Position numbers and translations under genes: made by a program. A model generated the notes under the pieces. It had not been told where the DNA came from. It was given only the letters and a program-made list of their open reading frames with translations, and searched no databases. DNA of 63,703 nt, filler included, from Olpidium bornovanus S191 (lineage: Eukaryota; Fungi; Olpidiomycota), in NCBI GenBank assembly GCA_017911155.1. It is 27 parts of 27 records of this genome, joined end to end, with 100 filler letters (N's around TTAATTAATTAA, not from the genome) between each part and the next. Parts side by side here need not be neighbours in the genome. Positions count along the whole stretch, not along the records: positions 1 to 4,146 come from JAEFCI010005067.1; 26 more parts are not named here. The stretch is one strand, 5' to 3'. Position 1 is the stretch's first letter, and every line of letters begins with the position of its first letter. Positions 1-4,146 of this stretch are shown here, piece by piece.

Positions 1-272
1 CATGGACAGCGCTATTATTGTGTTTTTTTTCTTTTTCGTTCTTTTACTTGCCAATCCCGACTGGGCCAGGAACGAGTTGGCTGATATTGAGAAAAATGCG
101 GAATTCACCTCCTTGCGGCGGTGGAGGCCGGCATCACTTTTGAGGGAAAACATTGTCTGGGAACTCTTGCCCCGCGAACCCCGGCGAATCTGAACCCCCG
201 ATCAACGATCCGTTGCAGAAAATCAAAATCCCACTGTTGTGTGTTGGTTCGTCGCCCTAAATTCCCGGTAAA

Positions 273-455
273 ATGAAGGTCGCCGTCATCATCGGCCTTG
301 CCGTCGCCATTCTCGCCGAGGTCGCCTGCGCGGAGCCCAACCCCGATCCTGCCCCGGCTCCCGCCCCGGAGCCTTTCCCTTCCGGCGGCTACTACGGGAA
401 GGGCAAGGGCTACGGCAAAAAAGGTTTTGGGAAGAAAGGTTTCGGCAAGAAATGA
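273..455 (+). CDS. Small secreted Gly/Lys-rich cationic prepro-peptide (60 aa)
   Basis: Clean ATG..TGA ORF. Hydrophobic signal MKVAVIIGLAVAILAEVACA, X-Pro spacer EPNPDPAPAPAPEPFP, and C-terminal SGGYYGKGKGYGKKGFGKKGFGKK. Third codon positions are C/G-rich, as in the real genes of this window. Confidence 0.8.
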   Translation: MKVAVIIGLAVAILAEVACAEPNPDPAPAPAPEPFPSGGYYGKGKGYGKKGFGKKGFGKK

Positions 456-1793
456 TTCTACGGCATTCTACGGCAAGAAGGGAAAGGGCAAGGGTTTCTA
501 CTGAGTTGCGCGTTTAAGAAGGCTATCGTTTCTACATTAGTGCACGGGATTTGTGTAGTATAGAGAGGGCTCCAGAAAATTTTTTTTATCTCTGGTGAGC
601 TTCGCCTGGAACTTTCTGTCTTCTGTTCTACGGCGAACCACGCCAAAAGCGGGAGGTGACAAACGTGGTTTGAGGCGAGTTAGAAAAGCGCAGCTGGTCG
701 TTTCGTTTGGCGCCAGTTGCTTCATACCGCTGCGCGTTTGATTGTGGGCTTGTAGCGGTCTCCGCTGTGAGGTTGGCGAAGTTGGCTTTATTTCTTTTAA
801 ACAACAACGTTTTGGGTTTCCCGTTGCGCACAACGAAATCAGACGATCCCTGATGCGCAGACCCCGATCTGAGGGCACGTCGTGACTTTGCCAGTCGCCA
901 GGGAAAGGGACGTTTTGCGGTTTGGAAAACTCACCGTTTTCTAGGTCGTCCATCTTCCGAAATGCGCCAAAATCGGCACAGGGGCGTTTTGGTCGGGTAG
1001 ACGCCGCGCAAGCGCAGGGGCGTACGTACCTCGTCCTCCCACGCAGATTTATTTTCGTAAGCAAAAACTTTTCTATTTACTTTCCAATTTAATTTCGGAT
1101 GTTGGAATTGACGCGCGCGCGGATACCGGCTTCACAGCTGTGCCCTTACAACCCATTTTTTCGTTTTTTTTTTTTCTTTTTCATTTTTTTCTTCTTTTTT
1201 TCTTTTTTCTTTTTTTCGATTTTTCTTCTTTTTTTTCGTTCTGGTTTTCGTCCTTTCGTTTTCTCTTTTGCCTTTCTTTTTTTTTCCTTTTTGCTCTTTT
1301 ATTTTTTCTTTTTCTCTTTCTCTTCTTTTCTTTTTCTGATGCTTTTTCCTGTTCTTTCGGTAAGCGCGCGTTCGCGAGCAAGCTTTTTTGTTGCGCAAAT
1401 GGCGGAGCGGCCACGACCGGACCACGTCGGCGCCGGCCAGAACAGGTTACCGCGAGAGCAGCAGCAACTCCGCTTGGGCCGAGCCTTTCTTCCTACGTGG
1501 TAAAAAGCAAGTTCCTTTCCAGGCAGTTCCAGCGCCGATCCCGGGATTATGTGCTGCAATTACAAACGTGTGCTGCACCGCCTTCCACCGCGCCCCCGTG
1601 CCAAGAACGGTTTGTTTGCCCGAGACGGCGACTTGCGGCGGTTTTGTCCGGCACGGGAAAATCGAATCCGCTCCTCAGCAAAAGGGGCGGGGTGGGGGAA
1701 GCAGGGGAGGGGGGGATAGTGGGCCGATTATTTTCAACTGGCTGCGCTCCACGGTCTGTAGTATGCCGCGGCGCCAATTAATACATATGACGC

Positions 1794-1867
1794 GGTCTCT
1801 TAGCTCAGTTGGTTAGAGCGTGGTGCTAATAACGCCAAGGTCACAGGTTCGACCTCTGTAGGGACCA
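1794..1867 (+). tRNA. tRNA-Ile (anticodon AAT, likely IAU)
   Basis: Acceptor GGTCTCT/AGGGACC + A; D arm with A box TAGCTCAGTTGG; anticodon stem TGGTG/CGCCA with loop CT-AAT-AA; T arm ACAGG-TTCGACC-TCTGT; followed by a TTTT terminator. Confidence 0.96.
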
Positions 1868-1920
1868 TTTTAATGACGTTAAGATTCCTGTGTATTTTAG
1901 TTTTTCTTTTGACAACATAT

Positions 1921-1961
1921 TAATAACGTTAAGGTTACAGGTTCGAACCCTGTACGGACCA
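1921..1961 (+). pseudogene. Duplicated 3' half of a tRNA-Ile (anticodon loop to discriminator)
   Basis: TAATAACGTTAAGGTTACAGGTTCGAACCCTGTACGGACCA aligns to 1827-1867, with a perfectly paired T stem (ACAGG/CCTGT). No D arm upstream. Confidence 0.8.
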
Positions 1962-3406
1962 TTTTAAACAGCCTTGTCCTGAACGGAAAGGAGAGATTTG
2001 CGCCGTCAACGGATCCGCGGAAGAAACCGTTCGCCGTCGAAGGAAGTTTCAAAGAGACCCAGAGGGGAAAGCATTCTTCTTCTTGTCTCTCGAGGGCAAA
2101 CCCGGCCCCCGAATTCCGGTGCCAACACGACCGTGTACGGCATCTCCTCCAACAGGTGATTCCACTTGTAGAACCGCGCGTCGATCGCCACCGAGCAGCA
2201 CACGACGCTTTTCCGGCAGCTCCAGCTCCGTGCTCCGCCTCACTTCGAAAGCCTTTAAAACGGTCATCTTCCCGCTTCGGGCTGCCGCTGTCCGACGACC
2301 TCGGACCCGCACCAGGCGAGGCGCCGGTGGAGGACGCCGCTTCTATCGGATTGCCAGCGCTGCAGGCAGCCGCGAGGGAGCGTTTGCGGCGACCGGCGAG
2401 TTGAAGCCGCCGTCGTGCACCGCGCAAGTTCGTCGTCCGAATGCACACTGCACGGCGTACCAGCACCGGAAGACGAGAGAGCGCACCTGCAGTCGTCTGG
2501 AAACCGATGCCAACCGTAGTAGAGGAAGAGGTGGAGGAGCCCGCAGCGACCGACGCCCCGTTGGCCCAGTTGGAGTTAGGCGGGAATGGTCTCGCCCGAG
2601 GAGGCCGCGGGCGGTGGGCGGTGACAGGATGCTTTTGGAGTGGTTACAGGGCGTCAAAACGTCCGCACAGCTCGATAAGCTTTACGTGGACAGGGGGCGT
2701 ACCACTGACAGCGACGACTGCTGGAAATTCCCCCTTTCGTCGGAAGTTTAGGGGAAACACACGGGACACACCCCTGTCTGCGGCACCCCAGACCAAAGTA
2801 AGGAGACAGTGGACGCGGACCGGGAAATGAGGACGTAGTGAGAGACATATATGCTAAATCTAGAATAGAAACGTAGAGTCATCTGGCCTCCAGCATTCCC
2901 ACAATCCTCCCAAGGAATATCTAATAGAAACCTCCAGGAGCATCGCTCCTTGCGACATAAGCCAAACTTCCATGATACTCAAATAGTTTACAAACATCTA
3001 CTGTACAAAAACCGTTGCGCTAATGTCCGAAGAACCGGCAGTCAACTGCAACAGCAGGCAACAAAAAATGGTCGATCTGCTTTGAATGTCTTCATCTAGA
3101 TGTGCAGGAGCTAGCGAAGAGGGAGATTGCTGCATGGCTGGAAAGGCACGCCGCTGGGATTGAGTTGTTTTCAAAGAGAATGGCTACAAAGCGAAAGGCT
3201 GTCTAGAGGGAGGACGAAGGCTATGATGATCTTGCAGTTCAAATCTGGAAGGAGAGCAACGCGTGCCGGGTATTTTCAAACGGAGGCTGCCAAACACCGC
3301 TGCTCACGCCGTGGCCTCTCCCTGTTTCCCCTCCAAAATAAAAAGAAAACAAAGGGATAAAAGAAGAGAAGCCACGTGATGTCAGAACCACTCAAAAAAG
3401 AACAAT

Positions 3407-3478
3407 TAGCAACGCCTAGTTTCGATCTAGGGACATTTGGGTTATGAGCCCAACGGACTGCCACTGTCCCACGTTGCT
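3407..3478 (-). tRNA. Initiator tRNA-Met (CAT)
   Basis: Reverse complement is AGCAACG TG GGAC AGTGGCA GTCC G TTGGG CTCATAA CCCAA ATGTC CCTAG ATCGAAA CTAGG CGTTGCT A. It has the A1:T72 pair, three G:C pairs in the anticodon stem and the ATCGAAA T loop, all eukaryotic initiator hallmarks. Confidence 0.97.
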
Positions 3479-4146
3479 CCTTTTGTTTTCGACAAACTGC
3501 CGTTTCTGTCCATTATAAAACACATTTAAAGGTTGGTTTCAGAAAGCCGTTGGCAAAAGGCAAGGGTGCGCTGGTCGTTAGCACACCCTAAATCACGTGA
3601 CTTCCTATAGTATATCCCGCGCCCACCGCCCCCCCTCCGCCCTCAACCGCCGTCGCGTCACCAGACGATCCATGGCGTGCCGCACCCATATCTCAAAGAT
3701 CACCCCGGCGATCACTGGGTAGAGCCAGAACAGGTGCGGCGCGTGCCGCGAGGGGAATTTCAGGAAGGGCAAACAGGTTCGGATCAAAATGATCATCCGC
3801 AACATCATGCGAGCTCCAGAACACTCTTTGAAGGCTCAACTTTCCCGCCTTTCCTGTCCGGCGGAACATTTGGTGGAAAGTTACCGGCGCAGTGTTTCAG
3901 ACACTACAGTTCGGAGGGGGCCCTGCTGGACAGCACCAGCAAATTCGACAACTGTGAGGGCCTGAGCGGTTATTCAGTCACTGGCGCGAGGTTACCTAGC
4001 CTGTTTGCGACTCGCTTAAAAAACCCATGAGAACTGCCCCTCCTAACTAATGGGGCCCCTCTTTCCGCGTGGGGTTCGCGTTCCTACTTTTTTGTTTACG
4101 GCGCTTCAGTCGTTCCACTCCCTGCGCCGCAAACGTGGTGCGCAGG

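Follow-up and report, generated by a model that had tools for sequence, protein, structure and literature searches.

The venom peptides of aculeate Hymenoptera, melittin among them, are made with anionic, repetitive propeptides that are read off by DPP-4, and the aculeatoxin family is reported to have no relatives outside the Aculeata (PMC6135544). In fungi, STE13 accepts XA or XP repeats and is present in nearly all of 250 proteomes, and Kex2 cuts KK 'to a lesser extent' (PMC6339444). The leaders of Yarrowia AEP and LIP2 consist of a signal followed by 2-10 XA/XP dipeptides, which are taken off by an aminopeptidase; the motif that describes them runs MK, x7-15, (XA/XP)2-10, a pro-region of x10-120 and KR (PMC5959983). 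Basic, highly repetitive proteins of limited amino-acid diversity are known from tubeworm cement, where they are represented by Pc-1, -2, -4 and -5 (PMC4275877).

We describe here an open reading frame (ORF) of the fungus Olpidium bornovanus S191, at positions 273-455 (+) of a window of 63,703 nucleotides, in which 27 parts of the assembly GCA_017911155.1 are joined by filler; all positions below count along this window. A sequence-only reading had likened the ORF to the hymenopteran precursors, and the X-Pro/X-Ala spacer on which that likeness was built is indeed known from DPP-4-processed promelittin and other aculeate venom precursors (PMC6135544), with XA/XP accepted by Ste13-type enzymes as well (PMC6339444). 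The same reading held that no characterised fungal family is like it, which is correct for the cargo and incorrect for the leader, given those of Yarrowia AEP and LIP2 (PMC5959983). What is new is an unprecedented cargo behind a ladder-type leader in an early-diverging fungus; the leader type itself is known in fungi. Parasites commonly have small secreted peptides without relatives, and very little has been described of what Olpidium secretes.

Results

The ORF comprises 60 codons, from an ATG to a TGA at 453-455 (+), and no other letter is found at this stop in the crossing contigs of two sequencing runs, X1 and X2. These runs are labelled 'RNA?' and 'DNA?', respectively, the label of X1 being an automatic guess. 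Retranslation gave exactly the protein reported earlier, with a 20-residue signal, eight X-Pro dipeptides and a 24-residue tail of S, G, K, Y and F. The ATG lies in the context AAAATGAAG, with an A at -3, and an in-frame stop at 258 precedes the ORF by 15 nt. GC3 is 0.75 vs 0.63 for GC overall, and the gene caller returned this 60-codon ORF as the sole gene on the 4146-nt contig JAEFCI010005067.1. Positions 195-272 (+) form a probable 5' untranslated leader, judging from the stop at 258, the ATG context and a 154-nt X1 contig that covers exactly 195-348; the boundary at 195 is the end of that contig and not a mapped transcription start.

Residues 1-20 (273-332, +) have the features of a signal peptide in their translation and hydropathy: Lys2, an uncharged V3-A15, a mean Kyte-Doolittle value of 2.26, and A18-C19-A20 before E21. 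By the -3/-1 rule, which is a rule-of-thumb reading, the best cleavage site is after A20 (A-C-A / E), and this predicted cut is the one that places the following ladder in X-Pro register. The ladder itself, residues 21-36 (333-380, +), reads EP-NP-DP-AP-AP-AP-EP-FP and carries a charge of -3.2 with three acidic residues. It is the only X-Pro run longer than three in the six frames of the 4146-nt piece. The longest run in 2000 shuffles of those 4146 nt was five, vs the eight observed, and when the residues at positions 21-60 were shuffled 200,000 times, eight consecutive X-Pro dipeptides never came up.

Residues 37-60 (381-452, +) make up a polycationic tail of 10 G, 8 K, 3 Y, 2 F and 1 S, with zero acidic residues, a charge of about +7.4 at pH 7 and a pI of 10.2. 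Within it, Tandem Repeats Finder detects a 15-nt in-frame tandem repeat with a GFGKK unit in 2.7 copies at 413-452 (+), which also appears as repeat family D1 (405-457). The ESM Atlas holds the exact ORF sequence with a predicted model of pLDDT 0.42 and pTM 0.27, and the peptide is predicted to be disordered. It had been suggested that the product might be membrane-active like melittin. The tail speaks against this, with 42% G beside 33% K and 21% aromatic residues, a helical hydrophobic moment of 0.02 that falls below 99% of its own shuffles, and the low pLDDT of the Atlas model. Since it has no helical amphipathicity, the cargo would not be a melittin-like pore former.

Taken together, the ORF, the shuffles and the split of charge between ladder and tail bear out the proposed design of signal, acidic X-Pro ladder and polycationic cargo, and we regard ORF 273-455 as very probably a real gene of this architecture.

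S191 DNA was taken from non-axenic zoospores washed off cucumber roots, and contigs were kept by tetranucleotide binning and similarity filters, the authors' term for the result being 'highly likely' Olpidium (PMC7865070). The contig JAEFCI010005067.1 belongs in all likelihood to Olpidium bornovanus, and the origin in an early-diverging fungus that had been assumed agrees with the Olpidium bornovanus S191 record. A search for taxon-informative neighbours with Pfam and the Atlas gave nothing convincing for the ORFs at 2006-2203 (-) and 3605-3808 (-), and three further ORFs of the contig had no Pfam match. Besides ORF 273-455, the contig carries only two eukaryote-type tRNA genes. The tRNA-Ile(AAT) gene at 1794-1867 (+) is followed, some 50 nt on, by a decayed second copy at about 1917-1968 (+), whose 3' part, anticodon loop included, is nearly identical through to the TTTTAA trailer and whose 5' half is unrecognisable; it looks like a dead tandem tRNA-Ile duplicate. 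The tRNA-Met(CAT) gene lies at 3407-3478 (-) and scores 60.5 bits in Rfam.

Other parts of the contig may be described briefly. No convincing protein-coding gene was found in 1900-4146, where Pfam and the Atlas were without matches, and where either strand has long ORFs, at 1897-2830, their Arg/Ala/Pro-rich composition is what a GC of 0.60-0.66 would lead one to expect. Between the peptide gene and the tRNA genes, 1156-1357 is a 200-nt T-/CT-rich stretch of low complexity (GC about 0.31, AT skew -0.7), which an X1 contig reaches after skipping about 80 nt of the window (1057-1136). Upstream of the gene, short low-depth X1 and X2 contigs match at 68-120, 91-188 and 159-243 and then diverge into unlike sequence, and a loose motif (…CAATACCAAAG) recurs at several places (68-243). 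This pattern suggests a dispersed repeat, or an upstream region that is rearranged in other strains.

The locus is present in X1 and X2 contigs at 93-99% identity. X2 contributes one contig, on 217-594, at a flat depth of 8.9. X1 contributes three kinds: the 154-nt contig on 195-348, at depth 134, differs from the window at 262 and 263 only; one of 775 nt runs colinear with 319-1056 (depth 22.7, about 93% likeness); and several short ones on 313-429 have a summed depth of 1267-3385. Contig depth is a poor gauge of expression, and the uneven depth of X1 (23 on the flank, then 134 and 1267-3385), vs the flat depth of X2, is of the kind that fits RNA. Since the 775-nt contig is colinear and without a joint, no intron lies within 319-1056. 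An intron extending the ORF was considered and rejected on this ground and for want of a plausible donor near the ORF end. The same contig marks 505-1056 (+) as a non-coding downstream stretch, possibly a 3' UTR.

Compared with S191, the 775-nt contig has three substitutions and no indels in the 137 nt of coding sequence that it covers (319-455), and 26 substitutions with six indels in the roughly 600 nt past the stop; the fewer changes in the coding part than in the flank are mild evidence of coding constraint. One of the three coding differences, at 350, is silent, and the other two alter the protein: T381C turns Ser37 to Pro and A433G turns Lys54 to Arg. The C at 381, and with it Pro37, occurs in all four contigs that cover the position, three from X1 and one from X2.

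Loose ends of contigs also yield copies related to the gene. One, in X1, has an in-frame 9-nt gap inside the signal (loose end at 293). In another the E-P of the ladder passes directly, and in frame, into W-K-K-G-Y-G, and a further copy at depth 1200 goes on, again in frame, as G-Y-G-F-G. Deep short contigs of this kind keep the frame, the ladder and the aromatic-G-K tail. We read the loose-end copies as paralogues, on the grounds that they are about 100 times as deep as the flank and that their own flanks do not match the window. The related copies suggest an expressed gene family; they could alternatively be divergent alleles of mixed strains. Of the words sampled from 195-505, 23-39% occur in four 'RNA?' runs that belong to a single study. 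A 6% sample of two large raw RNA runs from 2026 with the same species label gave 0 reads; this zero carries no weight, and the label may be the host plant's, as many big 2026 RNA-seq studies stand under it. We take ORF 273-455 to be a single-exon, probably transcribed gene, and probably one copy in a small, lineage-restricted prepropeptide family.

The region behind the stop holds traces of further coding sequence. A perfect 10-nt tandem duplication at 455-474 (+), made of 455-464 and 465-474, was picked up by Tandem Repeats Finder and by the repeat families; comparison with X1 and X2 places it in the S191 assembly alone, the X1 contig on 319-1056 and the X2 contig on 217-594 both being 10 nt shorter at 455. 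At 466-504 (+) follow 12 codons for F, Y, G and K only and then a TGA (502-504). The chance of 12 such codons in succession is about 3e-10, and the stretch matches 389-415 of the ORF itself at 74% identity (repeat family D2), which argues that it is tail-type coding sequence rather than random 3' flank. It would be a remnant of a longer form of the gene or of a segmental duplication. In the S191 window the frame of this relic differs from that of the ORF; in the X1 and X2 contigs, whose sole difference within the relic is T495C, silent in that frame, it equals the ORF frame and still stands behind the TGA. As S191, X1 and X2 all keep the TGA and the 60-codon frame, a 60-codon product is encoded in all three. 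The S191 copy appears to be short for its family, ending as it does at a TGA behind which remnants of tail codons lie. Readthrough of the stop has no support in the S191 assembly, in which the relic is out of frame, and could still apply to other strains.

Searches for relatives were made in several large libraries. A word-indexed search of 5.8 billion proteins returned no candidate relative of ORF 273-455. An exhaustive HMMER search of 1.84 billion representatives returned two matches only, P0001 and P0002, both of which we rejected as giant S/G/Y/T-rich proteins aligned on Pro-rich linkers. The one locus from the JGI metagenome scan, L002 (387-437, from metagenome contig JAEEGL013901635.1), was likewise rejected: its likeness to the ladder, in a PDPAPEPNPDP linker within an unrelated 463-residue ORF, is by chance. 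Pfam had no match to the ORF, a PDB sequence search gave chance matches only, the exact ORF sequence is absent from a 15-billion-protein cluster collection, and a text search for the tail motifs found no paper. Feature neighbours in the Atlas, which score 0.60-0.72 and are leads only, include arthropod small proteins, apidaecin, cuticle proteins and nematode peptide clusters. No homologue emerged from the word index, HMMER, the JGI metagenomes, Pfam, the PDB or the Atlas, which agrees with the sequence-only reading. This absence is weak evidence for a true restriction of the gene to its lineage, as small ORFs often go unpredicted and the ORF is itself missing from the cluster collection.

With promelittin and the aculeatoxins the locus shares the order of signal, repetitive anionic pro-piece of X-Pro/X-Ala type and short cationic cargo and, it seems, membership of a gene family whose leader is conserved while the cargo varies. 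The anionic X-Pro propeptide is, of the traits that mark an aculeatoxin, the one that we find here; sequence relatedness is absent by HMMER, and in place of an amphipathic helical lytic cargo there is one that is Gly-rich, disordered and without an amphipathic helix. The Olpidium ladder, moreover, is all X-Pro and has 16 residues only, and the peptide would lack C-terminal amidation, as fungi are without the amidating enzyme PAM, which also disposes of the amidated products that had been offered as an alternative. By analogy, the ORF would work like a promelittin/aculeatoxin precursor, and it is no member of that family.

The Yarrowia AEP (XPR2) and LIP2 leaders have in common with the ORF an MK-start signal that passes directly into XA/XP dipeptides; in the fungal precedents these are taken off along the secretory pathway by a dipeptidyl aminopeptidase (PMC5959983; PMC6339444). 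The ORF begins as their motif does, with MK and eight X-Pro dipeptides, but 18 residues stand between the two, three more than the motif limit. The Yarrowia leaders continue to a KR-ended pro-region and a folded enzyme, whereas the Olpidium ladder abuts a 24-residue cargo, with no KR and no folded domain. Since an XA/XP stretch in fungi is also a plain secretion-leader element, the ladder is no argument for a toxic cargo.

In composition the cargo is like the glycine-rich cationic antimicrobial peptides of arthropods, nematodes and plants, such as the acanthoscurrins, the ctenidins, the nematode NLP/CNC peptides and the shepherins. These are small, secreted and disordered, with Gly at about 40-60% and aromatic and basic residues scattered between. 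The Olpidium tail has the composition of the class (Gly at about 40% or more, a net positive charge and aromatic residues), which is a functional class and not a homologous family. It differs in showing no homology, in an unusually high lysine density of 33% and in having no His, Arg or Leu. The likeness of the cargo to these peptides, as to basic cement proteins, goes no further than composition.

Discussion

We propose that the 20-residue signal leads the peptide into the ER, where it would be cut after A-C-A, and that a dipeptidyl aminopeptidase of the Ste13/DPP-IV type would then remove the exposed X-Pro run stepwise, two residues at a time. The trimming step is drawn by analogy with the Yarrowia AEP/LIP2 leaders, alpha-factor and promelittin, and we give it an even chance. 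Until the ladder is removed, its three acidic residues would partly offset the charge of the cargo. The product would be a 24-residue, glycine-rich, disordered polycation of about +8, whose lysine charge and aromatic residues (Y/F/W) could engage polyanionic surfaces outside the fungus. Our best reading of the product is a putative non-helical polycation acting on anionic envelopes or walls; the explanation as a whole, from gene and family to product, we hold at somewhat less than an even chance.

Where trimming would end may depend on the strain. DPP-IV-type enzymes are not known to cut behind an X-Pro pair when the next residue is Pro. In the S191 copy, all eight P1' residues of the ladder are other than Pro, which would let trimming proceed as far as Ser37. 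In the X1 and X2 contigs Pro37 would end it one step earlier, and the predicted product there starts F-P-P-G-G. The claim of the sequence-only reading that trimming stops exactly at SGG may therefore hold for S191, by analogy with the known enzymes, and would fail for X1 and X2, given Pro37 in each covering contig.

As to function, we tentatively suggest, at about one chance in three, a glycine-rich, host-defence-type antimicrobial peptide directed against rhizosphere microbes. The suggestion draws on the small size of the peptide, on a pro-piece whose acidity counters the positive charge of the cargo, on the freedom with which Y, F and W replace one another and on the precedent of ladder precursors for bioactive peptides. 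On the other side, nearly any +8 peptide with aromatic residues kills bacteria in low salt.

The same composition, basic pI, short repeats and disorder would also suit a wet adhesive or wall-binding peptide, whose tail would bind the negatively charged pectic root wall or the cyst coat by charge and cation-pi contacts and help the wall-less zoospore to stick and encyst under water. In this it would be like the cement of tubeworms (PMC4275877) and the foot of mussels, with their small, basic and repetitive proteins, and it is in water that Olpidium zoospores have to take hold of roots (PMC7865070). Like Pc-1, Pc-2, mfp-3 and mfp-5, the peptide is basic, repetitive, dominated by Gly, Lys and aromatic residues and presumably secreted for underwater work; but at 24 residues it is shorter than known adhesive proteins, an X-Pro pro-piece occurs in no known adhesive precursor, and the DOPA chemistry on which those proteins rely needs Tyr, where some Olpidium units have Phe in its place and a related copy has Trp. 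We consider an adhesive role unlikely. A host-directed effector seems to us less likely again: here the polycation would enter the cytoplasm of the host, where nucleic acids, acidic lipids or the nucleus would be its binding partners. The thallus does live inside the root cell, and small, secreted, lineage-restricted and family-encoded proteins, of which this would be one, are typical of effector candidates in obligate biotrophs. The K-rich clusters may resemble nuclear targeting signals, and the X1 depth of 1267-3385 on 313-429 would fit as well, poor gauge of expression though depth is. The sequence is, however, of low complexity throughout, and Pfam, the Atlas and the PDB gave no known effector motif or fold.

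Two further explanations would leave the ORF with many products or with none of consequence. In the manner of the Kex2-processed repeat precursors (KEPs), cuts at KK might release several tiny peptides, with or without amidation. A signal (by the rule of thumb) and internal repeats (15 nt, 2.7 copies) that end in KK are present, and KK is a lesser Kex2 site (PMC6339444), yet KK pairs are all that the protein offers: it has no Arg, hence neither KR nor RR between repeats, and Kex1 trimming of the repeat products would leave G-F-G tripeptides. In alpha-factor and the KEPs, moreover, Ste13 sites follow each Kex2 site, whereas the single XP run of the Olpidium protein follows the signal. We judge this fate very improbable, and with it the mini-peptides by KK cleavage of the earlier reading. 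A decaying or functionless copy, whether a truncated and drifting low-complexity member of its family or a young ORF without a role, we hold to be improbable to a lesser degree. The stop followed by a relic of tail codons, the 10-nt duplication in the S191 assembly and the lack of homologues in our searches would agree with decay, as would two protein-altering changes among the three coding differences between strains. On the other hand, all three sources share the stop and have an unbroken 60-codon frame, the coding sequence is without indels and has fewer substitutions than the flank, and contigs of 'RNA?' runs cover the ORF.

Should the peptide prove to be inert low-complexity sequence, it would be one more orphan small secreted protein. 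It is tempting to speculate, as a long shot, that a zoosporic fungus has independently evolved the precursor design of hymenopteran venom and antimicrobial peptides, in which a conserved signal and a dipeptidyl-aminopeptidase ladder precede a hypervariable cationic cargo, for an abundantly expressed family of Gly/Lys/aromatic peptides with which it shapes the microbiome of the root or glues the zoospore to it. If this were true, the locus would stand for a secreted peptide of a new fungal class, from a lineage at the base of the terrestrial fungi, and for a convergent precursor design between fungi and stinging insects. A polycationic ladder peptide could then show how a wall-less zoospore, or a thallus within the root, handles competing microbes or the root surface.
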